Origin: Laetmonice hystrix
Taxonomy: Eukaryota
Direction of reading: 5' to 3'
DNA: 64,000 bases
NCBI GenBank assembly: GCA_965235115.1
Contig: OZ249451.1
Location: forward strand, 20,336,001-20,400,000
Under the pieces are notes generated by a model. The model was not told the DNA's origin and made no database searches. It saw nothing but the letters and a program-made list of their open reading frames with translations. Each line of letters opens with the position of its first letter. The first letter of the stretch is position 1. Shown piece by piece: positions 1,620-61,500 of this stretch. A program made the translations under genes and the position numbers.

Positions 1620-4600
1620 CTGTGTGTGTATTTCAAGTTATTTTTGATTGATTCTCCTACTATACCTTTTCCAAAGGATAAATGTTTTATTTTAATAGGT
1701 GTTTTGTCAGGGTAAAGAAATTAAAAACGAATATTAGGCCTACCCAAAAACAGAGGGGGTGGGGGTTAATGCCAGCCCCTTTAGGCTTACATAATGTGTG
1801 TTTCTTAACTTGAGTGACCAGTAACCGCACATTACTTACTTCATGGAAACAAGTAGATCTACATGTATAACACTTGACTAAAACCCACCCTTAGTTTTGA
1901 TATAGGCACCTGAAAGTAGATTTTAAAAAGTTATAGATCCCTATGCCCAAGTGTGCATAGTAACTTCGTTTTGACTCGTATGAATGGATTTTGCCCACTG
2001 TGATTATGTTTCATTCACTAGCTTACAGAGGTTAAAAGTTTGGTGATTATACCGAGGCTGACACAGTTTAGTTTGATTCGCTGAGCGATGTACTTCCGGG
2101 AGACGAAGTTCTATCTCGTGTTCCGTGGTCCTTTGACAGGGGAGCGTGTCAAACACATGTCAGATGTGAAACAAATGACTTGGCATTGCTTTTATTTCTC
2201 CCCAATCGCAGTGAAAAGGTTTTTGTGAACAACCCCATTATCTGCCTCGCGGGGTCTTCTCTCGATAAATTCAATTTGCCACGGGTGCGGGTGTTCCGAT
2301 GCTGGGTCAAGGAGTTCATATTTTCGAGTTATGTCAGGAAATAGGCCGAAGGTCGAGAGGTCAGCGATATATCTTTCCCAGGGTCATACCCAGACTAGCG
2401 TTATTGCTATCAGCCCATTCTGCACCGACCGAACAGGGTGGCAATAAATTAGCCAACAACTTCGTTAAGTGAAATTGTTTGGCCTGCACCAGTTCTCGGC
2501 GCAACGTCAATACGGTCGGACGGTCGGTAGCGTTCCTCGGTGGTCTATCAGTATGCAGAGAAAGGCCATTTTTTGGAATGAACCCTAAATTTGGCTGAGG
2601 ATGTGAGGGGCGCCCTGACTGACTGACTTGTAGACCTACACACCACAGGAAACCACGCCCAAGACTTGGCGTATAGAGGATGAGGATGAGAAACGGAGAA
2701 CAAAAGCGCCTGCTCACCGTTGTAACCCGTTAACTCACGACTGTTAGCCACAACCGTCGTTCTATTTTACCTAATGCGCTGACGTAAGGCGGGCTTTTTT
2801 CGCCATAGTATGAGACGCTACTCTATCGCCATGTCAACAAACGGTGAGTTCTTCAACTTCCTATACTAGGCCTACATCTAGCCTATCACAACCCTTAGAC
2901 TACTCTGAGGCCAACAGTGTTTTTTGATGCTCTATTGACTGGTGCCTGGCCGCCGACATAACTTGAGGCAAGCCACAGCTCCCCCCCCCCCCTCCCTTAG
3001 CGACGCTGGGTCACTGTGGCAGTAGCACACGGCGTGCTGACCGAGATTTGCCCTCCATTATCGCCCACCGTACCACCCTATCGATCGTATGCTAATATGC
3101 TCGGCGCGCCCCAAGCGGCGATGGTGAGAGATAGCGGCGTTCGTTCCATGCCAGGGACATGTAATCTCGCGACAGTAATGGCTGATGGCCATTGTGATAT
3201 TAAAAACCCTTGAACCGACCAAGGCTCGGTTCGGCGGTCAGCGTTCGGTTCCTATTGCAGCGCCACTGATAATTTAGATCCCAACAATATTTCATTAAGA
3301 TATGGAAATTATTTCGGCAGATTTTCTTTACGTAGAGCTCTCTAAGGCCTACTTTCACCTCGAGAAATCTTTTGGTCGCCATAGGACCTTCAGTTCGTTA
3401 CTTTTGCGTTTTGGCCGTTAACTTAGTAGGCCTATAATAGTCCTATATTTACTAGCGTGTTGTTGATGTTTTTGTCCTAGCCCAGGCCTAGGCCTACTTT
3501 CTTTCAAATTGTGCTATAGGATTTTGAAGGTATGACTCAGCCCGGACTCATTTAAGAAGATACTAACAGGAAAGAAATTGTATTAAAAGGGAACCTTAGA
3601 ATTAACGGTTAAAATTTACCTAATGTTTATTATGTATTTTACCTTGACAGTTTCCCAAAAGCTCCCAAATTTCCTTCGTTTTTTCTCTGCACATAGGCCT
3701 ATGTACAGACCTATGACTTTGTATGCGTTGATCTGTTTGAACCTCATATCTTACATAGCTGAATGTAAAGGTCTTGTAACGAAATCCCCACGTTTGACTA
3801 CGTGTGACTTTTGTGCATTTCATTTTAGCCGGTGACCTTTCTGGTATACTGTATTTGTTATTTTATTTTGGTCAGAACATAAGAAAAAACATAAGGAAAA
3901 GTAGGCCTAACAAATCTAAAGACTAAACGAGTCATTATACGAGTTTTCCTAATCTTTCAGCACAGATGTCTGAAACGATTGAATAACGTGTCACAAATAC
4001 TGTGCCCGTCAAACAATGTGGCGGCCGTATAAAAGGCGTAAAGTTAGGGCGTGTTCAGGGGCCGGGTGTCCCAGCCTACCGCCTCCCGCCAGCTGAGTGT
4101 GACCCGGGGACGGGACTGGTCAGATTCTGTCTGTCCCTACCGGTTGGTATAGGTCGGTAACTGGGGCCGGTTAGTGACCGGTCCGTCTGCTCGACCCGCC
4201 CCGGGCCTGCCCGCCTGCCCGCCCCGCGGCCTGCCTCCGTACTATAACTGGGTGTCTTTACCATACTTTCAATTGAAGCGCTCAGATTTCGCGGCCGGGT
4301 TGCGTGTCACTTCGCCCCCAGGGCCATGCATGGGCCGGGCGGCCGCCGGTAACGGTCCAGGCGGACACACAAAACCTGCCAGTCAGAGAGGCTGTACTCT
4401 AACATTCCTCAGCCACTGTTGACCAAGAGTTTGACAAAAGTATGCCCACGCAGTCGTACCTCTCTCGTCAACAGAGAAGTTATTTTCCCTTGATTTTTCA
4501 CAACAAAAATTTTCTGTTTTTTTTTCTCTTCATATTGGGCTGACAGGTCCTGTTGCCGCGTTCGTTGGTGCCGAGTGAATAGAGTTGTATCTCGAGCACA

Positions 4601-6295: not shown

Positions 6296-7371
6296 TGCGA
6301 CCCTGCAGCGTTTTCTCATCGTTTTCTGCCTGTTATTAACTGTTATTGGCCAAACTATATCACTAGCTGGATGATTTCTACATTAATGTTGGTTGTAATT
6401 CGTTTTGTAAAGGGGGTATGTATCTCTTTATATATTATAGGCCAACGTAGATGGGGTTTCTGTGGTTTTTCCAATGCTTCCCCCACCCTCTTCCCTGGCT
6501 ACGTGAGTGGGGCAACGATTGAATGCCATGGCATGATTGTGACATTTGGAAATATTTCTCGTTTGCCCTGTCGGTGTCTGGTACCCGATCTAACGGGGTT
6601 GGGGTGTTTTGTTTGACACAACAAGTGACAAAGTTATATTTTGTTTGGCATAGATCTAAAAAATGTTATTCATTGCATGACATTCACAATGCCTCCAACG
6701 TTCTGTTTACTTACTTTATCAAATATTCCCCGATGCATCTGTATTATTTCGGATTCGCGTTTGATTTATAGCGATCGTTTCTTTTTTCTCCCATGCGTCC
6801 TTTTTTTGTTATCGTTAGTGTCCGAAATATTGGACGCTTGCCTGTTGGACTACAGACTTCCGCTCCGGAGAGCCCCCCTGTGGTAAATATAGGTATAAAC
6901 CCCCAATATAGCTAGGCCATAGGGGTGACTGGGTGCTTTGTTTGACTAAACATTTGGATACTTCTTGGGAATCCATTGATGTTCATTCAGTAGAGAGGCC
7001 AATTCTCATTTTAATGAGGCTACGTGCCTATCGTTGCCAACGTACCATTAGCTTAATGATATTCTAAAGTTAGATATTGAACAGCCAGTCTCCCTGTGGG
7101 AGAAAACAGTGTCGACTGGGCGGAGGAGATCACCAGTTCACACGCTGCAGTCAGGGAAGCTTCGTAGTACAGATCAGCAGACATTTTCTTCCTCTCCTGG
7201 TCGATCTGTAAAGATAAGAAAGAGAAAGAAATGAAATTAGAACGAAAGTTTCAAATGTTCGTTCCTTCTACATGTATCGGTTTGTGAGACCGACCCGCAG
7301 CGCTCCAACCGTCGACCGCGCAAAGCACGCAGTTGTACCAGAAACACTCACCAGGTGGTCCACATGTCGAC

Positions 7372-30165: not shown

Positions 30166-30578
30166 CCCTGTCCATTCTGGTCCTGTCCATTCTGGTCCTG
30201 TCCATCCTGGCCTTGTCCATCCCGGCCCTGTCCATCCCGGCCCTGTCCATCCCGGTCCTGTCCATCCCAGCCCTGTCCATCCCGGTCCTGTCCATCCCAG
30301 CCCTGTCCATCCCGGCCCTGTCCATCCCGGCCCTGTCCATCCCGGCCCTGTCCATCCCAGCCCTGTCCATCCCAGCCCTGCCCATCCCGACCCTATCCAC
30401 CCGCCCCTGTCTATCCCAGCCCTGTCCATCCCGCCCCTGTCCATCCCGGCCCTGTCCATCCCAGCCCTGCCCATCCCGACCCTGTCCATCCCGCTCCTGT
30501 CCATCCCGCTCCTGTCCATCCCAGCCCTGTCCATCCCGCCCCTGTCCATCCCGGTCCTGTCCAACCCGCCCCTGTCCA
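30166..30578. repeat. 15-bp minisatellite (CCTGTCCATCCCRGC), about 27 copies
   Basis: Direct reading. It explains the LSIPA, MDRAG and GWTGP repeat ORFs. Confidence 0.95.
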
Positions 30579-34118: not shown

Positions 34119-36253
34119 AACAATCGAAATATTGTGGATGGATTATATTTGATAGAGGGTTTAGTGCTATAGATACACCTTCTCAAATAAAGGCGCATAC
34201 AGTGATACATACAACATTTGTATATACGCCCCGTCCTCTTTACTGAAGTTGAAGAGGAAAACAAATGCTAATACACATGTATAACAAATTGAAACAAAGT
34301 GCGTTTACTTGTTTTGAAGAAAATATTAGTATAATTTCATGCTTCAAGCGTGTATTATGTCAGTAATTATAAAAAAAAACAAGAAATGTACAACACCCTA
34401 AAAGACGTGTGTGTGTTAATGATTGGTGTATTGAGGGGGGGGGGTGTTGGGCGGGGGGGGGGGGGGGTCCGCGTGGGAGTAGGTGGTAGGGAGCAGACCC
34501 CGTTCTCCCAGGCCGGGAGTGGAGTCTCCGATATAGGAGAACGAATTGTTGTAAGGAATCTCATATCAAGTACTATGGCGGTCGATGGGCCCTGTCACCT
34601 GAAGTATTTCTCAGGGCAGGGTGATAAATCTTACCCCGATTGAGTCCTCACGCAGATTATTCCCCAGATTGGGGTCAGCAAGGAGGGGGTGCGCGCCCTT
34701 AGGAGGGTGAAGGGTTCGTGCTTCAAATATCGCGCCACGGCCGCAAAATAGAGGCTGGTCACAGGCGCGGAGAAAGAAAGAGGGCAGAGCCATAAATTAA
34801 CCCACGTCTCCACCGACCGAGAGCAGCAGTGCCTGCCAGCACTACTGCCACGGCGTTCCATTGAACGAAACTAGGCCACTAGGGCGTGCATAATTCTACC
34901 CCCCCCCCCTCCCCAACTCCTTATCGGCCGTGGCGAAGGAGTTGTGAACTATTTTTGGACGGAGGAATGACCAAACAGCCACAGCCAATGTTGTCATGGT
35001 TAAAGTCCGCCAGAGTCGGCGATGCGTCCTCTACGCCATCTGCCAAGTCGTTGGCTTTGTCTGAGCAATCGTAAGGAATATGAAGACATAGCATAAGAAA
35101 GGTTTACGTTATAAATTTAATGCGTTTAGTGGAAGGGAAAGTTAAACCTCAGACGTGGCGATCAATTATAGAGAAGTCAGGCAAAGTTTGTTTCGTTACA
35201 CAAAAGCATGCATGATTCAGTGATTGCCCACCAGGCATTTTTATCAGTGCTTCATTCATGTTTGCAATCAGTTTACCGTTAGCTGTCTTTTTCTCCAACA
35301 GTGGAGCATAACCAATATGCTCGTATCGGTCTATTAACAGGTCTGTGAAAGAAAGCAAATTGATAGCTGCCTGCGATCGTTGGTAGAGGTTCTTCTACTG
35401 GGGACTCTGTGAATGTTTAATGTGCCTTATCAATAGAACGACAACACTGATGAATATGCATGTCAGATACATATTGGTAGCACAATCAAAAGGTATTCCA
35501 TCGCCTCATCACGAAATAGTCTGTCACTGGAGGGGAGAATTCGATGGAGGCACGTTAAATTGGATTAGAAAGGCACGAGAACGAGGTTGAGATAGGAAAC
35601 AGGGCCAGAGACTGGGGATAATTGACATGAAATTCGATGATTTAATCATTCCTTTAATCAAGAGTCTTTGGATGAGTCAAATAGCTCATTAAGACAGTGG
35701 TTTTTGTCGCCGAATCATCAGGATCGATTATATGGCCCGCAAGGCTGGACTTTCGTTTGTTGCTGCGTCCTTGGCTTCATTTGGAGCTGACCCTGTTTTT
35801 ATAAAGGACCTCGATCATGGCATTAACGGATTGAGCCCCGCTACTCATTCAATCACGGTATTTTTTCCCATGTCGTGCATTGCGCGCGGAGGCGGCCGTT
35901 TTCGTGTTGAGTCTGTGTCGGTTTCATGGACGTAATTATTAGAAAGCAAGGTCCCTTCATGCTACCGAGAGGCGATGGTTATTTACGACTGCCATCAGAA
36001 ACATCTCTGTGATAAAAACTCACGGGACAATTTCTGATCAAAACACACACACGTGAACTTTGGATTTCTGGTAGAATTTCTACTGTGGTAACAATCAAAG
36101 CTTTTGCCGTAATATAAATTCAGGTATAAAAGAAACACAGGTGGCGTTTTAGCAAATTCGTTGAACGAAAAAAAAAACGGAGAGAAAAAACAGGGGGATA
36201 AATTCACCAATCTCGTTTTTCTGGTGTTTAGGTTTGGTTAACGATAGAACTGT

Positions 36254-44217: not shown

Positions 44218-44295
44218 CTGTCAAACCATGATGGAGGTCAAAGTTGAGGCTGCTCGACGCTGATTGGCTGCTGTAGACCACGTGATATGTAAATA
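44218..44295 (+). promoter_or_regulatory. Candidate Hox4 proximal promoter: TALE site CTGTCA (44218), DR1-like AGGTCAaAGTTGA (44235), inverted CCAAT (44263), E-box CACGTG (44279), GTAAATA (44289)
   Basis: The motifs are read directly 80-160 nt upstream of the ATG. NF-Y and USF are known activators of the vertebrate Hoxb4 promoter. Confidence 0.6.
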
Positions 44296-44376
44296 TCTAC
44301 ATATAGGGAGGGACTAGTCGACTCAAAGACGACAAGTAGAGAGAAAAATTATTTCCACCCAATTCAGCCAAAATTA

Positions 44377-44929
44377 ATGACCATGAGTTCGTTTTTGATG
44401 AACTCGAGCCCCTATGTGGAGCCAAAATTCCCTCCAAATGAGGAATATTCTCACAATAACTACATCCCGAATACGCAGCCCGAGGATTTTTATCGACGAG
44501 CGGCGCAAAATTATGGTTACGGTGCCTCTGGAGCTCCTGACCATCGCCGCTTCGCGCAGGAGAGTTTTCCGGCCAGTTCGAGCTATGGATGTTCGCCGTC
44601 AAACGGAGTTTCTCTCAATGCTGTAGCAGCTGTAAGCGCGGCAAATACCCAAGGACCAGGATATGCACCTTCTTCATCACACGGGGAAAACGATGTGTTA
44701 TCGCCATCGACGGAGGCAAACTGTCAACCGAGAAACAGTCCGCCTAACACGACCAGCATGCCGCAATGTACACAACAGGGAGTCAGCCATAGTCCGGGCC
44801 CCCAACACCCACTCGGCCACACTACCGTCAACAGTAACATGACCAACAACAACACACACAACACGACAACCAACACAAGTCCACCGGTCATCTATCCTTG
44901 GATGAAGCGAGTACATTTAGGATCATCAA
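44377..44929 (+). CDS. Hox4: Hox4/Deformed coding exon 1
   Basis: Group-4 N-terminal motif MTMSSFLMNSSPYVEPKFPPNEEYS and hexapeptide IYPWMKRVH (YPWM 44893-44904). A GTAAGT donor at 44930 gives phase 1. Confidence 0.96.
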
Positions 44930-47900
44930 GTAAGTTCACGCTAACATTCCTTGCTACTTTTTACGGGTCGAGTTGGCGGCGTTCGCTCGACCTAACTCCC
45001 GTTGTCACGTTGTCAGTTCGAAGCGAGGCCTTACCCCGGTCGACACGGTCCCAACTATCGCCGTTTTCTAACTCCCCATGGCGTTAATTTCTCAAGATAA
45101 CGTATGAAATCGACACCAAACATCCTAATTGACATCCATAGACATGTTTGCGGCCCCTGTTGTTCTTGAAAACAACTATTTTGGTCACGTTCATAGTTGT
45201 AAACAAACGCCACGAGACCCAGTCGGCTTCCTTCGAAACTAGGCAATGGCGTGCATATATTAGGGTCGAAAGCAGACGACATTTGTAAATCACCACCTAA
45301 ATGGGACCATAAACTGAGCCGGGGCCGTCTGCTTCTGTCAAATCCTCACATTAAGTGACATTTGGCTATAACGTGACGTACTTGGTGATTATCCCGGTAA
45401 ACTTCAGTCACGTTTAGTGGTTTAGGTAACATTTGGGCCAACGCGTCATTCTGGAGACGATTTGAGCATGGTTTACGTCAGTGGTATAAAACAACCAATC
45501 TCAGTTACATTGAGAGGATGCGACTAAAGTTGAGACACTTGTATGTTGGGGTTGATTGTTATGTTAAGGGTGTAGAATGCTATGGTGGTTTAGATTCGGG
45601 ACAGTGACTGCGGAAGCCATGGTTGAGGTGACTTAGCCGTGTGTAGACCTATACACTCGGTGCACTGACTGCATCCATGGTTGTATATCTCTCATACAGT
45701 CTATATTCACCGTGTGTTCTCCCCTGACAATCCCCGCCGGCCGTGTTAGAGGTAGCTTGGTGTCTGGCTGTATCTTACAGTCAACATTGACCCCGAGTTT
45801 ACCATTGTTGTGTGCCAGGGCCAGCCGTGCCTGTGGCTGCCGTTGACCGGGGGCCAGCGGTGACCGACCGACCGACCCGCCCCGGCCACCTCACCACCCG
45901 TCCCCCGGCTACCACTCAGTCCGTTCCCGGGACGTCCCACGCCAAACTTACCGTGCCCCAGTACACCGCACAACACGCTTCAAATTGCTCTCTTTCATCG
46001 CAAACCATGGGTGTGAAGTTTGTTTACGTTGTTGGAAACCAGTGCCGAAAGTTACCGACTTTGTTCGCGTGGCTACCACATAGACAAAAAAACTACCACT
46101 TCCGGTCGATTTTTTTACACTAAGTGCCACGGTAGACCACGTGGTTTCTTGTGTGCATATATTCATGACTTGTTTGGTGTGCACTTGATGTATTGTTATG
46201 GGAAAAGATAGACCTTCTCTTTTGAGAGAAAGACCTTTGAATCTCCTGCGAAGTTAATGTGGTTGATAAGGTATACGACAAAACGCTACCATCGCTTCAC
46301 TGTTAGCCCATGGGGAAGATTAGTTCTAAAAATCGCCGCACCGAGCGCTGGCTGTCCTACCACTCTTCGTATCTGTGTAAACATAGGGAAACTGCTGCTA
46401 GCACTATCTCATAATTCCAGGGTTTAATCGCCGCTACATCTATGTAATCTAGCATCAGCGTTCTAGCCGTGGGAGAAAAAGGCGGGGTGGGTGTGGCGGT
46501 TGGGGGGGGGGGGGAGAGAGAGGGGGGGTTGGGGGGACGTCTGGGTAGGACAATGCGCCTCAGTGGCTAGCAGTGGGGGCCATGTGGTTTATTGTGTGGT
46601 GATGCCCGCGCTCCCAGACCAACATCTGGCGTCCATGGTTACATCAACATGACCGGTCTCATCAGCCTCCCCTCCCCGCCACCTCCACCGGCTCTCGGCC
46701 CGTCCCGTGGGGTGCCAACACCAGGGCCTGGCCGGGACCAGGAGAGTCGGCAACCGGGGGCCTAAACCAGCCGGCCACCGGCCCTGCCCGGCCCGGTCAG
46801 CCCGGCCAGGGCCAGCCTGCCCCTCGGGCGAGCAACCCAAGCACGGGACTAATCATCGAAACCTATTCCTCATTATTTGTTTACAAGTCTCCGCCGAAAT
46901 ATCCATATCCATTATACTCACCCCCACCCACCCCCTCCCTCCCCCATACACCACTTACTCACACGACTAATTAAAACAGACTCTACGGTTGAGTCTGTGG
47001 TACCTTAGACCCCTCATCCATCATTCCGTCCAAAAAAATCTCATCTAAAAGGTCCCGCTCATTATAACTGGTTAACTGTATACAAAACTAGGAAACTTTC
47101 CCTAAATACACTTACACGACTATAACTGCAGCGAGTCGATGCGTCCCGGACCCCCCACCCCCACTCCGGAACAGTTTAAGCCAGACCAACCCTCCATAAT
47201 GGGTGCTACAAGTTGCCCAGTGAGAAACTAATTGTAGACGATTTGTCAAGCTGTGCCCCAGCGCCACCACGATACATTCACTATACAAGAACAGTCCTCT
47301 GACTATAGCACATATACCCTGGTGTATTCGGGTCCAAGTCCCTTGTCATAACACTCAGGTACATATACTCTAACCTACATGTATATGTCATTCATGTTGA
47401 GCGTGTTACCTGAGCATCCCTGGCGTCACATGACGCCTAATGTGGCCAACACGGTTTTTTTTAGCGTCCAGTGTCCGAATATTACAGGGATAAAAAATTT
47501 GTTCACGGCCAGAGCGCCAACGCCGACTTGTGGTCAAAACCACAGCGGTGGCTGCCCCCTGCCTATTCCCACAACCATTCCCACACCCACTCACACGCCC
47601 AATCACACCACGCACATATCCACGCACACACTCTGAGCGGCCATGTTGAATCATAGAAATCTAGTTCAAGCCTATGTCTCATAACTAGGACATCACATAC
47701 AGTCGGCTCTTCAGAAGTTTGGCATGGGAAAGTTTTATTACATATCAGCCTCGACGTATTCACAGCATATGTGGATCTGAGTTAGAACATGTAACTTTCA
47801 AAAGATGTTTTTTATTTTTATATATTTTTTCTATGCAGACGGTTTCCGTGGGTTGGGTTTTTCTTGTTTTTTTTTTTAAAGGGGGTATTTATCACAAGCT

Positions 47901-48527: not shown

Positions 48528-48868
48528 CCGCGCAGAACTACGGCAGTGACTCCAAACGAACACGGACCGCCTACACTCGACATCAAATTCTCGAGTTGGA
48601 GAAAGAATTTCACTTCAACCGCTATTTGACACGGAGACGGCGAATCGAAATCGCTCACTCGCTCTGTCTAACGGAGAGACAAATCAAGATTTGGTTCCAG
48701 AACCGACGGATGAAATGGAAGAAGGACCACAAGTTGCCCAACACCAAAGTTCGGTTGTCGGATTCCTCCAACAACAACGGGTCTGAGATGGGAATGTCTC
48801 CGGAGAGAGACTGTACACCGGCAGGTCTAACGTCTCTATCTCCGGAACATGACGATATATCGGCCTGA
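48528..48868 (+). CDS. Hox4: Hox4/Deformed coding exon 2 (homeodomain 48551-48730, LPNTK motif, stop TGA 48866-48868)
   Basis: [60 protein letters not shown] followed by KLPNTK, which is diagnostic of paralogy group 4. It is in frame with exon 1; the total is 894 nt = 297 aa plus stop. Confidence 0.97.
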
Positions 48869-50256: not shown

Positions 50257-51115
50257 TATGGATGTGTACCCTATAGTCCTTGTGTCGTGCTTTGTAGACC
50301 TCTAATCTCAGTGGACTGTTTTTACCAAGCAGACTGTATGTATACCCTATATATATACACCCAAGTCATTATATATATACCACAGACATGGATGAACATT
50401 CGCTGTACTCGGCCTGCAGAAACTGCCTCTCTTGTGACACATGTCAAAAAAGTACCGTAAGAGCCTTTACTTGTAAAACAAAAAAAAATATATCAAAGTT
50501 TTTGAACATGACGCAGATACAAGCAACTTCTCCCAAATGTCTACTTGATCCGACTATTTTGTACAAAGATATAGCTGTACCTATGCGCTTCGCATGCCTG
50601 TAATATTGCAAGAATTATTTATGTATACGGTAGAAGTTGTTCGTACCATATGATATACCATTATATACACTAATCATGTCAATCAACACACACTCCAACC
50701 AAACTGAGGTGCCTAACAAGGATCATTATGACAGAAACAGGACTTATATCTTCATCCTTGAAATGATATATTCATAAAAAAACACACAATTGTCCTTTCC
50801 CTGAATGAGGTGGTGTAGAACCTCTCCTGATGTTTTTTGTGAGTCGTTCGTTGTTTACTATATCTAGAGACTGTACATTTTCCATTGTGGTTGTAAACAA
50901 GTTGAGATGGCATTTAAATATTAATAACTATTATAATTATATTATATCATAAAAGTGACTTCATGTGAGTGAGAGAGCTGTATAGTTGTGTTTAATCTGT
51001 AAGAGTTGTCAGTGAGCTATAATTATATATATATATAATGTATGTAATATAGATGTTATATACATTATATATACACATCAGCCTGGCCTTGATGTAATTT
51101 GTAAAGACGTTTTAT

Positions 51116-51157
51116 CTGAGGGCGAATTGCTGAGGGCGAATTGCCGAGGGCGAACCG
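51116..51157. repeat. 14-bp triplication (cYgagggcgaaYYg)
   Basis: Direct reading of the sequence. Confidence 0.8.
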
Positions 51158-51834
51158 CTGCAGAACACAGACTAAAAAAATCGGCGGGAGTTAAGAAAGA
51201 AAAAAGTTTGAAATTGTAGCTGAACTGTAAAGAAAGGTACGTCAACAGGTTAATGAGGTCACAATGACGTCATGTGATTAAGGAACGCTAATTGTGATTG
51301 GTGATCGGGGGGTGGGGTATTTTTGCACAGCTGGATGATTCGTGAGATATTCATCTCAAAAACTCGGTAATCAGGGTCTTACACAAGAATCTCGAGTTTT
51401 CTGACTATATCGTATTTATTTTACATTCTATATATATTATGTATACCACAGTTACATATGTGCGGTCATGGAAGGGGCGTCCCCAATGGTTCAAGGACAT
51501 GAACGTTCTGCAGCGGTTTGTCCCCCATTCTGTATACAGTAGTATACAGTTGTATATGTAACCGATCAGGGGTGGTCAATCAGAGAGATTCGGTGATCAA
51601 TAAGCCAGATCACCGGTCCTCGTCACTGGCCGTGGGAACGTTATCCAGGAGTTTTGGAGGTGGACACAGCCATCTGTGCTGCCACAGCTAGGGGGACCTC
51701 AGAATGACAAGGGGCCCCCTAGAAACTGCAATAATTTCATGCCCTGTTCTCGATAACTTTGATACCTTTGACAAGTCATGTCTCAGATTAGTTAAAGGAT
51801 GTGTATTTTATTTTATTTTTCCCCTCTCATTTTC

Positions 51835-51840
51835 AATAAA
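51835..51840 (+). terminator. Possible Hox4 polyadenylation signal AATAAA (would imply a 3'UTR of about 3 kb)
   Basis: First canonical AATAAA I found after the stop codon, with GT-rich sequence downstream. ATTAAA at 49149 is an alternative. Confidence 0.25.
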
Positions 51841-53068
51841 GACGTTTTGAGGCGAGTAAGTAATTGTAGTGTCTTATTTACATGAAAGTTCTGTCGACAA
51901 TAAGGAAATGAGTTTGTGGCTCATTGCAGTATAGATGTCATAACTTTAATGTGTAGATAGGTGGCTAAATCCTTTACAGTATAACCTACAACCGAGGTAA
52001 AGATTTTCCGCAGTGTTAGCGATATTTTAAAGAAAATATCAACTTTATTAAGTTTCCCTCCACCTGGCGTGGTTTCAAAGTCTGCAGGTGTTTAAAGTTA
52101 ACTCTTGTGGGTGTCTATTTTGTGTTTTTTTAAACAGCAGGATACATTGCACTTCGTCATTACACAAGTATCATGTCTCCTGTGAAAATCGTTCAATAAC
52201 TGTTCTTAATTCCATCCTTTGTCGCAGCCCCCAAAGTCTGGCACACAAATGTCTTTGTTCGACACCAGTTTTACCTAATTCAGAAGCAATTTGAACATGA
52301 TGTATCATTGTCATTCTTCTCTTCGTTCAGCGACGATCATGAAATGACAGATTTGCTTCAACCGCTGCTTCTCTTTTCTTTTTGGCGGCGGTAATTCAGT
52401 ATTTGAGACCAGATCCATTTTAAACATACTGTTGTTTGGAAGGGCCCCTGGCTTCCCCCCTGCGTCCCAAACAATGCCGTCGACGCGAATTTCCCCCTCC
52501 GTAAAGTGGCTGACACATTGTAAAGAGGTAGCATCTTCTCAAGCCTGGTGCCTCTCGTTCCCTCTCTCTCTGAGAATAATGGCGCGCGTCCTCTCTTGGA
52601 ACTCGAGCAAGATGGAAGGGCAAACCAGGACCTAAAGGCGTTGCACACGGGCAAAGCCCAGGCCCGCGGCATTCGAGAATCAATCATTGCCTCTTCCGTC
52701 GTGTCCTTAAAAGCGTGGCCAAACTCGCCATTATGGTCCACAAAGGTGCTCCACTCCGGCAGGCCGTTTCTCCCCGTTATGACGCCTCCCCTAGCCCTAT
52801 TCCATCCTTCTATTAGATTACGAGCGCAGCAGGAAAGTGCATTGTGTGGCGTCTTGAACGTTCGTCTCGGCGGCGTTTTCAGGCTGTTAACGCACTCCGA
52901 GCAAGGAACACTAGCCAAGCCAACGCCAACACCCCCACCACCTCCTCCTGCTCCCCCTCCCTCCTCCACACCCCTCCCCCCCCCCCCAACACACACACTC
53001 TCCTCCGATATGTCATCCAAGCAGAAATCATATTAAGTTCACAGTTCTGCTGACCAAGATCCCGTTGA

Positions 53069-53082
53069 CGGCCCCCTGGTGG
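53069..53082 (-). promoter_or_regulatory. Candidate CTCF site (CCACCAGGGGGCCG)
   Basis: Perfect 12-nt core CCACCAGGGGGC. Confidence 0.6.
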
Positions 53083-56000
53083 GAATGTGAGTGGTTGCTG
53101 AGACTAAAGCAGTAGGCAAGGTATCTTCTCCTGTCTATAGGTGCTCCAGGGCGAACAGCATGTGGTTTCACTTATATGACATGAGGTATTGCGAGTTAGG
53201 CAAATCAAGCAACTATTTCACGTGCCGCTTTGAGTTGTTGAGCCAATATACATCCAAGAGGGAGAACTTATAATAGTGTGTCTAACGTGAAAGATTTCTC
53301 GAGAGTACTAACGTAGGCTATGCCAGTTTCAAGATGAGGCTCTGTTAGTTATCCTTGTATTTATCTCAGAGGGTTTCAACAGGATAGTTTTATTGTGGCG
53401 TTGGAGGAAAAAATACACATTTTAAATATCTTTTCTCGATATATATCATTTGAAATTAGGCTGCATATCTCAGGGGAGTAAAAGGACTGACTATTTGAGG
53501 AGAATTGTTACTTTATTATAATTGACGTCAAAATGGGACAAACGATACCACCCTCATCGAGGTCACAGAACTATTAATTAGGAAATCCTTAATTAGTGTT
53601 ATTACGTATGTTGACTAAGCGAGGATGTTGATATGACATATAGTGTACATCAGTTTATGTCAGACCCCCAAGCATGACGGAAGTACATGGTCTGCTACTT
53701 GTTACCGGGCAACTAATGTGAACATTTCGACGTGGCGGCCGGGTTCTTTTAATTAGTTGATAGCGAGGGTTGCGGGCAATTTGTTTTGTAGGGGAGTTCT
53801 TAGATCAAAGGGCTTGGATTTACAAGCTATCAGTCACGCATTACCCCAGCGGACACCTGTGTACGATTGACCCCTTGAGAACGAAACGATACCTTGACCG
53901 ACTTCAATGGTATACTCACGTTAAAGATCCAAACTTCCAACGCCATGGCTGTAGGGAAGTTCAAGTTCCTGCCTTGCCGACATATAATAGCCGTCGGCAT
54001 TACGGTATAGTCTGAATAAGTTCACAACTTTGCATTGTTTACACAATGTGTTAGAGGTACATATATATATACCCGAGGCTTGGCAAGCAAGCGGGTGACT
54101 TGCCTTATACAATTACTTTGTCAGAACGACTTGTCTTGTGTCAACATAACAGTAAGAACATTTTAAGTGGCGATAGAACCCCTGCGTTTTTACCCGTTCG
54201 CTGTCCCCACACTCTACTGTCAACCGTTGCACATGTGATACGTTACCATTAACAGTTTTGCTCGCGACTACAATGCAGAGTTGTTGGTCGTGACTTTACT
54301 TTCACCTTTGGCTGCTATTAAAGCCTATCAGTTAAATGTTCCCATGGGTGATCCATTACAGCAAAGAGACCATGTCACAGTGATACATAGATCGGGTTCA
54401 CCGCCAGCATGTCGAAAATTTCACTAAAAGTCGTCTGCGTAACGCGCGCGTCACTTTGTTCTTGGCGGGAAAGGCGGTCGGGCCCCGTCAAAAGTTGGGT
54501 GGCATTCCCGGTCCGCCCAAAATGGCTGACACTTGATGGATGACTTTTAACGTCCACGGCAATTAATCAACGGCTTTATTCTATTCTGGTGGCGGCCAGT
54601 TGGTGGACATTCACGGTGGAGTTGGGGGAAAGGTTTGGGCTGCAGTAGGTCTATACACCCACTCGCCAGTGCGCTGATAGTTAGGGCGGACTGGAGTTTT
54701 CTAAACGTTGAAGTTTTGTAGTTGAATATACGGTTAAAATATCTTCACAACACTCATGAATTGTCATTTTAGAGAAAATACCTCTGTTTTCGAGCTTTGT
54801 TGTAACATGATGGTCGAGTTTAGTTACAGTTACGGGTTAACAGAGTGTTGTACATCAACATGACATCAGATATGAATGCCTTTTGTCCAATGCAACCCGT
54901 ACTACTGTCACGGAGTTCGGTCCTCTTGTGTGTATGTTTATGGGCCAAAACAGCCCGCACAGTTTACGGAGGTCACACCTGTGACATTTATAGGCTAGGC
55001 CTTGTATACATCAGTGTGGCGCCTACACACGTCATCAAGGTTTTCGTTCATGTGGCTGTATTGGTTTACGCTCATTTCTATTCAACAAGGTTTAACTTGC
55101 ATGACCTCTGGGCAAGGGGAGCTGGTCTCCGAACGACCTAGTTGTAGGTAACAAGTCAGAATACTTTGTGTTATATGCAGTCATGAGAAATATGCATTTT
55201 CATGTCATCCGCTGTATAAATAGTGAAATCAAAATGACTGAACCATCTACGCTGAGAGTAAAAATGGGCCCTGGTGAAAGTTAGATGGTGGGCATTGAGC
55301 TGGCAAGGAAATGCATTCCTGAATGCTGATAGGACTGACGGATAGGTCAGGGGACATCTTCATTGAGAGGTGTGTGTGTGTGTGTGTGGGGGGGGGGGGG
55401 GTGATGGACGTGGTCAGACCTTGGATGAATGGCCGGGCTGACCATGGAAACGAACAGCCCTTTGAGGCTGAGAGTTATAACGGGTTGGGGTGGTTGACTT
55501 ATTGTAGCCGGTTAGACCGGGGAACGCGGTGTTTTCTTCACATTCATTTGAATCTTGAGATTTAATCAGAGAGAACCAATGAGAATCAAAGAAAACGTCG
55601 TGGGAAGGAGAGAAATGGGTAGTGCTAATTTCAATTTTCGTTTCAAGTCGTAAACATAATTATTAGTTCCATGATTATCTTATCAATTCCACGCCGAAAT
55701 TATCATTTAATAACCTAATATCAAACTTCATGTAAAGAATAGATAATTATTCTATTTTTATATTGGCTAACAATCACAACGTTCACTTTGTCACAATTCG
55801 CGTATTTTTATAAACCAAAATTACCGATCTAAATTACCGTAAGTTCTCAAAAAAATCGGGAGTTTAATTTTCGTATATGCTACAGATATTCTTAGTAAAA
55901 ATGGCGATATAATTATAAGCTAGCGAAATTAATCAAATAAATTTGTTCATGCAGTGGAAATATATGTTAGCATATATGTGAGTATAGTTCACGATTTGAA

Positions 56001-56223
56001 CGGTGTATTAAACAAATGCTTTGCATCTATGCTCATCTGTATTTCTCTATTGTAATATAGTGCTGTAATAAATTATTTTATGTCGCTCGGCCACCATACG
56101 GACGGCAGTGTAAATACGCGACGGCCGAGGCGGTATTTAGTTCCATGGACACGGTAATTCTGCCTGTCCTTATTCAACAGTCAGGTCATAGACTTAGAGC
56201 GGTTCAGGTGCACGGGTTGGCTG

Positions 56224-56240
56224 TGAACTCGGGCTGACCC
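56224..56240 (-). promoter_or_regulatory. Perfect DR5 nuclear-receptor element (GGGTCA gcccg AGTTCA), RARE type
   Basis: The + strand reads TGAACT cgggc TGACCC. Extra half-sites lie at 56183 (AGGTCA) and 56201 (GGTTCA). Confidence 0.45.
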
Positions 56241-57037
56241 GGCCTTCTAGGCCCACGAGCGATAGGCGCTCACAATATATAGGCCTAACGCCATGCACAG
56301 CCACTGCCGTGTAGTAGTGGTAGGTGGGTGGTAGTAATGCCAACCCAACACATGACCGCTATTTCTAGACCAGTGACCCTTCCCCAGCTGGTCCGTGCAG
56401 CCCTTGGGCCCTCCGCCCTGGCCCGGGCTGCCTCAGTCCGCCTACAAGGGGGGATGGAATTTTTCTACTTCGGTACGGTGGGGGAAACTTGCGGAAAGTT
56501 GAACGCTGGCGAATTACAATATGGTTCAGCTAGAGACCTACTACCTGAGTGCTGGTAATAGTGCTGTACCTTTGTCTACTTATAACCCATATTTAGTGAC
56601 GGGCAGGGTCCATTTTCTAAATGGAATAGCGGCGGATCGATATATTTAGTGCAGCGGGGTGTGGCAAGCAAAGATGATGTTTCCCCGCCGGCCGGTGGGC
56701 CGAGATGATGGATGCCTCTGCTAGGGAGATCGAACTTGTCGATGGAAGCATGCGCAGGGAGAGTGGCAGTGTGGGTGTGTGGGTGTGGGGTTCTCGGCAC
56801 CCCCACCAATGAATGGTGGGTGATTTCTCCCCGCCCGACCCCCACAACCCTGATAGAACCCCCCCCCCTGCCCCCCCCCCCCCCCCAGAACCCCCAGTGC
56901 CAGGAAACGTCTGACCATTTACCCACACATCCCTGAACCGTTGCCGTATTGGATCTGACAGGGACGGGGGTTTCTAGCATCCGGGTCCTGATCCGACAGG
57001 CGCAAGTCAAGTGTTTCCTGGTGTAGTCGGACTCTAT

Positions 57038-57784
57038 CACTCCCAACATCACTCCAAACCAACCAACCACTCCCAACATCACTCCAAACCAACCAACCAC
57101 TCCCAACATCACTCCAAACCAACCAACCATTCCCAACATCACTCCAAACCAACCAACCACCCCCAACCTCACTCCAAACCAACCGACCACTCCCAACATC
57201 ACTCCAAACCAACCATTCCCAACATCACTCCAAACCAACCAACCACTCCCAACATCACTCCAAACCAACCAACCACTCCCAACATCACTCCAAACCAACC
57301 GACCACTCCCAACATCACTCCAAACCAACCATTCCCAACATCACTCCAAACCAACCATTCCCAACATCACTCCAAACCAACCACTCCCAACATCACTCCA
57401 AACCAACCATTCCCAACATCACTCCAAACCAACCAACCACTCCCAACATCACTCCAAACCAACCAACCACTCCCAACATCACTCCAAACCAACCGACCAC
57501 TCCCAACATCACTCCAAACCAACCATTCCCAACATCACTCCAAACCAACCGACCACTCCCAACATCACTCCAAACCAACCATTCCTAACATCACTCCAAA
57601 CCAACCAACCACTCCCAACATCACTCCAAACCAACCATTCCCAACATCACTCCAAACCAACCAACCACCCCCAACATCACTCCAAACTAACCAACCACCC
57701 CCAACATCACTCCAAACTAACCAACCAACCCCAACATCACTCCAAACCAACTAACCACTCCCAACATCACTCCAAACCAACCAA
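57038..57784. repeat. 26/30-bp C/A-rich minisatellite (CACTCCCAACATCACTCCAAACCAACCAAC), about 26 copies
   Basis: Direct reading. There is almost no G on the + strand. Confidence 0.95.
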
Positions 57785-58195
57785 TCAACTGGCTACACTT
57801 TCCCAGGGCTGGTAGAAAATCAGTGAGCTTTCCCAGCCCTACATCGGTGGTCAAAAAATGACACGGTCACGGACCAAAAAACACCCACCATGTCTCCTAA
57901 TTATGTACATTCCCTAATCGTTCACTTGGGTCTTTTATTGCAATGATAATAATCATATCGGACCTGTATTTGAGCTTGCGAGATCAGCACAGATGAGTCT
58001 ATTAAATTGCCACACCGGTGTGTATCCTAAATACATTCAAGTCCTGGGGAAGGTGTCCAAATTCAGGGATCAAAGCTTTTACTGGGATAAAAGGATCCTA
58101 GAGGGAGGTCATCAACTTGATTGGCACTAGGACAATATCACAGGTGTCACTTGATTTTTGAATATTATTCTTTGTTTGAATATAATTAAGGTTCT

Positions 58196-58517
58196 GATGC
58201 TAGCGACTGATCAGAACATGCCTGGAACACGTAAGTTGTATCAGTTTTAGAGATGCTAGCGACTGATCAGAACATGCCTGGAACACGTAAGTCGTATCAG
58301 TTATAGAGATGCTAGCGACTGATCAGAACATGCCTGGAACACGTAAGTTATATCAGTTATAGAGATGCTAGCGACTGATCAGAACATGCCTGGAACACGT
58401 AAGTTGTATCAGTTATAGAGATGCTAGCGACAGAACACGTAAGCTGTATCAGTTATAGAAATGCTAGCGACTGATCAGAACATGCCTGGAACACGTAAGT
58501 TGTATCAGTTATAGAGA
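58196..58517. repeat. 56-bp tandem repeat, about 5.7 copies
   Basis: Units start at 58196, 58252, 58308, 58364, 58420 (internally deleted) and 58460. Confidence 0.95.
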
Positions 58518-61500
58518 GACCATTTCATTCTGTATTCCCTGGGCGTGAATGCAGAGGCAATATTCAGGTAGCCTGGACCCCCTTTTAATGTCCTTTTTCT
58601 CATGTTTCCTGAATTCGCTAATATTAAACCCCCTTTTTGTCAGACTTCCCTGACCCCCATTTAAACCAAATTTTAGTCCTGCCTTTTATACGGGGCAATC
58701 GTTGGTCGTGGCTAAGTGAATGAAGCCATCAGGGTGAAGGTTTGGTCGAGAGGGTGAACGATTCAATGCCCCACGACTGGCTACCACGGCTTGCCGCTGT
58801 GTCAAATTACCCCCACTACTGGGGCACTTAGTAATTACCACCGCTAGACTCCAGCGGCAGTCATTTCCAGGCATTTCTAGGAACATCCTTGGAGCGATGG
58901 CGTGCCTGTCACGGTCCATGCACCCTCTGGCGTTGTCATGCCAACTGTAAAACGCCCCCCCCCCCCCGCCCCCCCCCCCCCCGCCGAGTTGTAGGGATGC
59001 TATTTATTTTATCAATGCGACGAGAAAGCAACTAATGGAAGTTGTTCATATTTTACTGTATCTCACAGTTTTTTTTTTATAAAAGATACTCAAGAATCGA
59101 GAGTGTTTTAACAATACCCGTGGACGGGGACGTACATTATGGGACCATTTTGTAGGTCAACACGTAAACGCTAAGAGCTCAATGCCACAAACAGCGATGG
59201 TGATGTAACTTATCTAGAAAATCATTGATGGATTTTTCTTTCGCCTTTACCCCCCCCCCCCCGCCCCCTCTTCTACTTACAGAAATATCAGGGGAGGCCT
59301 CAATATTTTCCAGTTGTGTGCACCTATAAAGTCACGCCTGCTGATCAGTGCGCATGCGTGTGGTATTGGTTTAATGGCAGCGTGTTTGAAGTTTGATCAT
59401 GTCTACTGGTCGGGGGGGGGGGGGTGGGGGTGGGTGGGTGGGGGGGGGTGGTGTTCCGGCACATCCGGGCAACAGCGATGACGGAGAGAGAAAAACCAAC
59501 TGATTGAGAAACGCCATTGTTGAAGATAATACCTTGGTGATATTAGCAGTGCGCTCTAGACGTTGATAAGTTGTAATGAATTTGTTTGTTTATAAACGAA
59601 ATCATAAATTATTTTCTCTGACTCCTATTTGGAACTCCCCCCCCCCTCGTTGAGTACGTTTAAATCATGCCATATATGTTTGTGCATGTGCTAGAGTTGG
59701 GGGGAGGGGGGGGGGTAGACATCCATAGCTATCTCACACCCTCGACGCATGCGTATTGATCAGAAACACACCGAGATAAGATCTTCGATTGTTGAGGCGC
59801 TGTACGGATCCCCACGAGAATCAAACAGTGGGTTGTGAGGGTAGGTCGGGGCAGGGGGTTGCAGGAGGTGGGGTTAGGGTTTGTGACGGCTGGTGAGAAT
59901 ATTCTCAAACCACCAGCCAACGTTCACATGCCATTTTCTCCCGAAATTAGCGAGAAAACAAACGCATATTAAGTATTGATATTACCCCTCATCCATTCTC
60001 ATTTTGTCGTGCCACGTAAGCGAAAATCTGCCGCGTCGACTGAGTGGTCCATCACGCGACTGGTTCTTAAAATTCTCATCGCTTGCTTTCCTTATTTGGC
60101 AATTAGTCTCGCCTATTAAAGTCGCCATATTAACCATTGATATAATGATGGCTCCCGCCTACTCAGACATAATTAGCCATTCATGATTCAATTTACCACA
60201 ACATCCAAATCGTCGACAGAACAATGAAGATTGTTCCGAAGTTCTTTTTCTCTCGACATCTACGAGAGAAGAAAAATAACGTTGTCATGGAGATGTGATA
60301 CTGATGTTTGTGTAGATACGAATATTAGTTGGAGCGAATGTCATGTGATGTACGCGCATCCGACACATGCCTTCCTGGTAAAATATGTGTCAATAATGGA
60401 GATGCATTCCGTGTGTTGATATATATATGCAGACATATACAAATCAGAAGTTATATGAATATTCATCGGGAACCACCTCCCCTCTGTATAAATAGATGCT
60501 ACATGTCGATGTGATTGACGTTATCTATAGATGAATCAAGGTAGTTGGGTTAGAAATAACGTAGGTTCCGTGAACAGAGGGACCTATATATTATGACCTA
60601 CATTTCCTCCTGGGGTGGGGAGAGCTTAGATCGTTGGCCTGATCAATCCTTACTGTATGGAACAGTTCTATGGTTCTTGTGATGATGAAGACGTCAGACT
60701 ATAGGCTGTGCTCTCAGGGAGTGCTTCACCTTGTATCTGGGATAGGGATGTATCCAGGATACAAACCAACCACTGAGGCCCAGTTCACGTGGGAGGGGGT
60801 CATTAGGGCCATGGTGTGAATTAGCCTGAGTGGTTGTGGGGTCCAGCCACCCCCCCCCCCCCGCCCCCCGCCCTCGGACCCTCAACCCGGCCGTGTCAAT
60901 CGGCCGAGCGCCCCATTTTGGAAATGATCTTCGATTTGGGGCAGTAAATGGAGTCGAATCCATTCGCCTAATTATGGGCGAATAACTAAGTAATGGTAGT
61001 GAACAACGGTCATTAGGCGAGTTGGTAATGGTATGGAAGGGTGGGAGGAAGGGTGGGGTAAAAGGACCGTTTGTCTATCCACCCCCCACCCCCCACCCCC
61101 GCCAGCCACTCCGCTCAGATCAGGCGCAATATTTGCCCAGACTGAGCGCAGGTTCATGGCAGCCTCGCTTTAACTTCTGAAGACACCATTATTGACAATC
61201 AATGGATTTACTTTACACTGTGTGTGGCGTGTGAAGACACGGGACTCTGGGGAGGGGTGGGGGTGGGGGTGATTGTAACAGGCCAGGTCTAGAGACACTG
61301 CACGGCCGATCGCGGAGGGAGACAGAGAGAGGGGCCATGGAGGGGGGTGTTGAGGTCAGGAGGGACGCAGGGCAGGCCGGGGAAAGCCGTCAGACCTGCT
61401 CTGAAGTGGCCGTCGCAATTTCCACAAAAAGGACTGCCTGTGATGTTTTGATCAAAGCGAGTAATATGAAGGTTCTGGCCTCCGAGGGAGAGCCCAACTG

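Follow-up and report, generated by a model that had tools for sequence, protein, structure and literature searches.

Results

The window, by which is meant the whole 64,000-nucleotide stretch that was analysed (G000:C21:20336001-20400000), forms part of a Hox cluster on C21 in which all the genes lie on the + strand and in canonical order: Lox5, bearing the spiralian KLTGP motif (C21:20221854), Hox5 (C21:20278148), Hox4 (C21:20384548), Hox3 (C21:20546502), Hox2 (C21:20596755) and Hox1 (C21:20632585). The Hox4/Dfd gene, with Dfd/Hox4 homologues, is represented in the window by exon 1 (44377-44940, +; 3' end approximate), which begins with the start codon and ends shortly after the YPWMKR hexapeptide, and by the homeobox exon (48548-48868, +; the start being approximate), which closes with the stop codon. 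The next homeobox 3' of Hox4 is that of Hox3, 162 kb downstream. In a search with Hox3, Urechis was the only named match aligned across nearly the full length of the query, and the cluster of sequences similar to the Hox5 protein includes Helobdella. The KLTGP motif marks the animal as a spiralian; these matches, with the best match of its RAR ligand-binding domain being to Platynereis, make it probably an annelid. The 117 bp or so before the Hox4 start (44260-44376) give an alignment of about 72-80% with the relative described below, a third spiralian and Tubulanus, and partly with Gigantopelta. In many bilaterians mir-10 is positioned upstream of Hox4; the 44 kb upstream of Hox4 (window 1-44000) gave no Rfam match to it at gathering score, and no Rfam family reached that score anywhere in the window. 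A scan of the window for bacterial-type promoters and terminators was empty, which is irrelevant here.

Between Hox4 and Hox3, the minus strand at 56224-56240 reads GGGTCAgcccgAGTTCA (GGGTCA-gcccg-AGTTCA; plus-strand letters TGAACTCGGGCTGACCC) and fits RGKTCA-N5-RGKTCA. It thus has the two (A/G)G(G/T)TCA half-sites, the direct orientation and the 5 bp spacer that define the DR5 class. Since the stop of the homeobox exon ends at 48868, the DR5 lies 7,356 bp from Hox4 on its 3' side. Nearby are an AGGTCA half-site (56183-56188, +), in the orientation opposite to the DR5, and a GGTTCA (56201-56206, +) followed directly by an imperfect GGTGCA (56207-56212, +), the two making up a DR0 (56201-56212) of which the second member does not match RGKTCA. 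The DR5 and these three more half-sites are contained within 60 bp (56183-56240), and the AGGTCA is part of a four-half-site cluster there. The original prediction had named this DR5 and its companion half-sites and had placed them 7.4 kb 3' of Hox4; the letters read exactly as claimed, and the distance measured from the stop is 7.36 kb. A multicopy-repeat origin of the DR5, a point that the prediction had raised for checking, is rejected because the 627-Mb genome holds a single copy of the surrounding 321 bp, which found no match but itself.

Several other features are seen in the vicinity. A 30-bp minisatellite of 26 copies, nearly free of G on the + strand (57038-57784), and a 56-bp tandem repeat (58196-58517) together span 0.8-2.3 kb beyond the DR5. 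Around 35 bp from the DR5 there is a TATA-like sequence, ATATATAGG (56275-56283), at the point where AT-rich DNA gives way to a block of 55-60% GC. No contig of run X4 (kind unknown; 5,991 letters) covers the DR5 or the TATA-like site.

By itself the DR5 motif hardly exceeds chance. RGKTCA-N5-RGKTCA is found once in the window against an expectation of 0.15; at least one copy was present in 14 of 100 shuffles, and first-order Markov simulation gave P=0.20 for at least one DR5 per window. A DR5 accompanied by at least two further half-sites within 60 bp had a probability of 0.005 per window in the Markov simulation; over the window as a whole there is no enrichment of half-sites (142 vs 157 expected). 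Genome-wide, there are 9,928 strict DR5s, or one per 63 kb, many of which sit in obvious repeat arrays; a reversed-pattern control gave 2,908, which is 3.4-fold fewer. The chance of 10-15 percent per window that had been put forward for a perfect DR5 is therefore in agreement with the shuffles (14%) but understates the density in the genome, a density (one per 63 kb) that is itself inflated by repeats. The strict DR5s of the genome are also asymmetric between strands (3,348 forward and 6,580 reverse), and arrays of them recur on C1, for example AGTTCACCCTAAGGTCA every 2-3 kb; the DR5 motif is therefore part of at least one repeat family.

Only three close relatives were found in a protein search with Hox4. 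The closer relative P0001 has 79% identity in Hox4 exon 1, and its contig stops about 0.6 kb past the homeobox. Comparison was made with the relative of ENA ERZ25767047, present as two haplotigs and 60% identical in the protein of Hox4 exon 1, in which 25 kb 3' of Hox4 were walked; the conservation test 3' of Hox4 and of Hox5 thus involves one informative relative, and the tests were devised after the data had been seen. A series of non-coding blocks is conserved between the two species in the same order. On the left of the DR5 these lie at 50556-50625, 50836-50988, 51341-51463, 52279-52319, 52678-52748 and 52799-52821; on the right, the anchor at 58856-58945 is made of two adjacent matches (E 0.069 and 0.008; rel_ext 30322-30401), and a further block follows at 60921-60995 (E 1.3e-6; rel_ext 34932-35006). 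Identity with the relative in the conserved blocks is 70-88%. Contigs of run X4 cover 51012-51843 and 52630-52855, and the first conserved blocks may therefore belong to a long Hox4 3' UTR or to a non-coding transcript.

Within this framework the relative also has a DR5, AGGTCAggccaAGTTCA (L004:2815-2831), on the same strand as that of the window, and it is the only DR5 across 39.9 kb of the relative. The two elements are inside the same anchored interval (52821-58856 in the window, 20125-30322 in the relative) and stand at similar distances from the right anchor, 2.6 kb in the window and 3.0 kb in the relative. The 17-mers agree at 14 of 17 positions, the AGTTCA half-site being included in the agreement. 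The relative's element is preceded by another AGGTCA, forming a DR1 that the window's site is without; conversely, the extra half-sites at 56183-56212 have no counterparts in the relative, and no TATA-like sequence is found next to its DR5.

The significance of this coincidence was assessed with 779 families of DR5-like repeats, equal to it in information content and degeneracy, drawn from 164 kb of sequence of the window's species. A same-strand match in the relative's interval was obtained for 1.3% of these families (empirical p 0.013) and a same-strand match anywhere in the relative's 24.9-kb 3' region for 4.4% (p 0.044). Of 25 families that occur within the window's interval, RGKTCA alone is matched in the relative. 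The conservation is confined to the element, its place and its strand: flank similarity of the paired DR5s is at the level of random pairs at 60, 100 and 200 bp per side, the DR5 is not within an alignable conserved non-coding block (the nearest are 3.4 kb and 2.6 kb away), and the flank of the relative's DR5, when searched against the genome of the window, gave only a 42-bp match on another chromosome.

The 3' flank of Hox5 was scanned over 28 kb in each species. In the genome of the window a DR5, AGGTCAccttcAGGTCA, is present 15.65 kb 3' of Hox5 (C21:20294068-20294084, L039:8068-8084; -), followed at 24.9 kb by a triple array, AGGTCA-N8-AGGTCA-N2-GGGTCA (C21:20303347-20303374, L040:7347-7374; -), and at 25.9 kb by another DR5 (C21:20304312-20304328, L040:8312-8328; +). 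Both of these DR5s are perfect AGGTCA-N5-AGGTCA. The sites tested in this genome, namely the Hox4 DR5 and two Hox5-flank regions that hold the three elements just listed, are all single copy; copy number was determined for this genome only. In the relative, a DR5, AGGTCAtcctcAGGTCA, is found 16.9 kb 3' of Hox5 (L048:18418-18434, -), a DR1 at 18.75 kb (-), another DR5 at 21.2 kb (-) and a triple array, GGGTCA-N8-AGGTCA-N1-GGGTCA, at 25.8 kb (L049:2221-2247, -). A minus-strand DR5 and a triple array 3' of Hox5 are therefore matched in distance and strand in both species. Measured from the last robust anchor, AGGTCAccttcAGGTCA lies 5.2 kb beyond it and AGGTCAtcctcAGGTCA 5.4 kb, and the core AAAGGTCA(c)GGGGTCA is common to the two triples.

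Taken over the four 3' flanks (Hox4 and Hox5 in both species; 107 kb), 5 minus-strand DR5s are seen against 0.21 expected (Poisson P=3e-6), the expectation being derived from local half-site density and the statistic having been devised after the data were seen. Leaving aside the Hox4 site through which the locus was ascertained, 4 remain against about 0.18. When 2,048 family-by-strand combinations were compared, RGKTCA(-), with counts of 2 in this genome and 3 in the relative, was outranked only by two poly-C/poly-G families and was the best DR5 family common to both species that is not of low complexity. It was also the only one of the 2,048 combinations for which a triple with N8 and N1 or N2 spacing occurs in both species. 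The excess is limited to the 3' flanks of Hox4 and Hox5 and holds only relative to single-copy or local half-site expectations: compared with genome-wide density, the 3 DR5s in 54 kb of this genome's own flanks are not significant, and there is no cluster-wide excess (3 DR5s in 294 kb sampled vs about 4.6 expected). By our own estimate the joint positional matches stay improbable even under the inflated genome-wide density.

The other 233 kb of the Hox cluster that were sampled in this genome (stretches at Antp/Lox5, Hox3, Hox2 and Hox1, 44 kb upstream of Hox4 and 89 kb further downstream) have no DR5, and none is present in the 19 kb or so after each of the Hox1, Hox2 and Hox3 homeoboxes. The Antp/Lox5 region (C21:20196001-20236000) has two DR1s and one DR2 of strict RGKTCA half-sites; its 154 half-sites in 40 kb make it about 1.7 times as dense in half-sites as the window. 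Further afield, the nemertean Tubulanus polymorphus, the gastropod Gigantopelta aegis and a third spiralian have neither a strict DR1, DR2 or DR5 nor shared conserved non-coding blocks in the 10-14 kb that follow Hox4 on its 3' side. As regards conservation across related genomes, then, position and orientation are kept in one close relative, but three distant spiralians are without such a repeat.

Around 40 nuclear-receptor genes are encoded in the genome, including COUP-TF-like and HNF4-like members. An intact-looking RAR gene occupies roughly 6299200-6304400 of G000:C29. The exon for its second zinc finger is closest to RAR alpha, beta and gamma (E 3e-25, compared with 7e-16 for RXR); its ligand-binding-domain exons have the DQITLLKAACLE signature intact together with an AF-2-like PPLVMEMLD, and their best match, in PDB 6EU9, is a chain named 'Retinoic acid receptor', which we take to be the Platynereis RAR structure of PMC5821490. 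The DNA-binding domain of an RXR/USP is found at C8:13734400. The objection that the species might lack RAR, which would have told against the original prediction, therefore fails, an intact-looking RAR and an RXR having both been found. The RAR introns contain five AGGTCA direct repeats (DR6, DR5, two DR4s and DR1) beside tandemly repeated sequence, with TCAAGGTCA in four of the five (L022, G000:C29:6297001-6307000, positions 4299-4344, 6761-6851 and 7241); these may be repeat-derived or autoregulatory sites.

Discussion

The DR5 at 56224-56240 probably functions as a nuclear-receptor site, a reading that draws on the recurrence of the element in a second species, where its location and orientation are unchanged, and on the similar motifs that follow Hox5. 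It would belong to a small group of nuclear-receptor direct repeats, mostly antisense DR5s, that flank Hox4 and Hox5 on the 3' side; in the second species these repeats appear to have retained their place, type and orientation as the surrounding DNA diverged past alignment. In the mechanism that we propose, a dimer containing RXR would occupy both half-sites and modulate transcription of Hox4, of its neighbours, or of both. The retention of single-copy repeats of RAR/RXR type beside Hox4 and Hox5, amid DNA that can no longer be aligned, is what would be expected as the signature of selected binding sites.

That the DR5 is instead a neutral occurrence of a short and common motif, the relative's DR5 and the Hox5-flank matches being coincidental, is a possibility that has to be taken seriously. 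A DR5 turns up in 14-20% of shuffled or simulated windows and 9,928 times in the genome; the flanks of the paired DR5s have no similarity, the extra half-sites are not shared, deep conservation is absent in the three distant spiralians, and the tests were chosen after the fact. Furthermore, the RAR locus itself has five AGGTCA repeats of repeat-derived appearance, so that such motifs arise easily in this genome. Coincidence sits less comfortably with the family-based null, which gives 1.3% for the Hox4 interval alone, with the two further elements at matched places 3' of Hox5, one of them a three-half-site array unique to RGKTCA among the 2,048 families, with 5 minus-strand DR5s where 0.21 were expected, and with the single-copy state of all three sites in this genome. 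A real regulatory site is the more probable reading; a retinoic acid response element (RARE) of chordate type and a site for some other receptor are both special cases of the nuclear-receptor-site explanation.

RAR/RXR heads the list of candidates, since DR5 is the element classically associated with it and since spiralian RAR/RXR binds DR5 in vitro, but its identification as the specific occupant is to be regarded as possible rather than probable. The binding has been described for annelid and mollusc RAR/RXR on DR1, DR2 and DR5 (PMC5821490; bioRxiv 10.1101/2025.03.09.642214). The strongest form of this idea, in which the DR5 would be bound by RAR/RXR, Hox4 would respond directly to retinoic acid (RA) and the element would be positionally homologous to the vertebrate Hox4 3' RAREs, is highly unlikely. 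In its favour are the DR5 type, the RAR and RXR genes of this genome, with intact AF-2 helix and DQITLLKAACLE signature, the in vitro binding, and the parallel between the Hox4-3' and Hox5-3' sites of this genome and the vertebrate Hoxa4/b4/d4/b5 RAREs (PMC4510006). Against it, neither RA nor rar morpholino knock-down shifts the hox1 and hox4 boundaries of Platynereis, the Platynereis RAR responds to RA only at micromolar levels, and gastropod RARs do not bind RA (PMC5821490); the oyster RAR gives no response to atRA like that of zebrafish RAR, nor does atRA induce hox genes in the oyster (bioRxiv 10.1101/2025.03.09.642214). The lack of DR1, DR2 or DR5 in 10-14 kb 3' of Hox4 in the nemertean, the gastropod and the third spiralian also tells against it, as does the lack, unlike in amphioxus, of a DR5 in the 19 kb or so after the Hox1, Hox2 and Hox3 homeoboxes. 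By analogy with Platynereis, gastropods and the oyster, RA dependence is unlikely, and we give RA-dependent control through this particular DR5 very little weight. Alternatively, the DR5 could be a real site for another nuclear receptor such as NR4A/HR38-RXR, COUP-TF, EcR-USP, TR or similar, an explanation that we consider rather unlikely. The genome offers candidates among its 40 or so nuclear receptors, COUP-TF-like and HNF4-like ones included, and a set of repeats that mixes DR1, DR2, DR5 and DR8 does not point to RAR specifically. The extended half-site AAAGGTCA, the NBRE preferred by NR4A receptors, is seen in several of the Hox5-flank elements and, for the triple, in both species; NR4A receptors also pair with RXR on DR5. 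However, DR5 is the dominant shared spacing as well as the classic RAR/RXR element, and the Hox4 DR5 is without the A-rich 5' extension.

The comparison with vertebrates has to be made with care. Functional RAREs adjoin Hoxa4, Hoxb4, Hoxd4 and Hoxb5, several of them in the Hoxb4-Hoxb5 interval (PMC4510006). The locus described here resembles these in that RGKTCA half-sites form a DR5 that follows Hox4 at a distance of a few kb, in having further DR5s between Hox5 and Hox4, and in that both RAR and RXR are encoded in the genome. It differs in that its DR5 is outside any conserved enhancer block, in that the gap between Hox4 and Hox3 is 162 kb, and in that Platynereis, the only annelid tested, has no effect of RA on hox4 (PMC5821490). 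Because of the size of the Hox4-Hox3 gap, positional equivalence with vertebrates is loose, and because the DR5 flanks are unconserved there is no enhancer block to compare; the vertebrate parallel is suggestive as an analogy and is not a demonstrated homology. The original prediction had suggested that the element, if conserved, would indicate pre-chordate RAR/RXR (or orphan-receptor) wiring at the cluster position seen in vertebrates. RA/RAR wiring at that position is not supported, given the absence of such direct repeats 3' of Hox4 in three distant spiralians, the unconserved flanks, the loose positional equivalence and the Platynereis hox4 boundary, which is insensitive to RA and to rar knock-down (PMC5821490).

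Amphioxus provides a second comparison, with DR5-type RAREs 3' of AmphiHox1 and 5' of AmphiHox3 (PMC3227721). These too are DR5s of an invertebrate Hox cluster at fixed positions relative to the anterior Hox genes. The amphioxus elements, however, drive RA-dependent neural expression in vertebrate embryos (PMC3227721), whereas the sites of the present study lie beside Hox4 and Hox5 of a protostome in which no DR5 is present in the 19 kb or so after Hox1, Hox2 or Hox3.

Direct RAR control of Hox genes is held to have originated in chordates or deuterostomes, and annelids are stated to lack direct RA regulation of hox genes (PMC5821490). In our search of the literature no published description was found of RAREs in a lophotrochozoan Hox cluster. 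If RAR/RXR were the occupant, the nuclear-receptor wiring of the anterior-central Hox cluster would be older than thought, and it could be ligand-independent or make use of a low-affinity ancestral sensor. A pre-chordate origin of RAR/RXR input through DR5s that follow Hox4 and lie in the Hox5-Hox4 interval, with survival in at least one spiralian lineage at the relative positions of the vertebrate Hox4/Hox5 RAREs, is quite unlikely. If another receptor were the occupant, the sites would still represent a new regulatory input to a spiralian Hox cluster. In either case the outcome is a set of five or six named candidate sites of 17-28 bp each.

A last resemblance is to the RARE of the RAR-beta2 promoter, GGTTCAccgaaAGTTCA. 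The DR5 described here points the opposite way, and the relative's DR5 has no TATA-like neighbour; like the RAR-beta2 element, the window's site is a DR5 with AGTTCA as its 3' half-site, and the TATA-like ATATATAGG some 35 bp away recalls a promoter-proximal layout.
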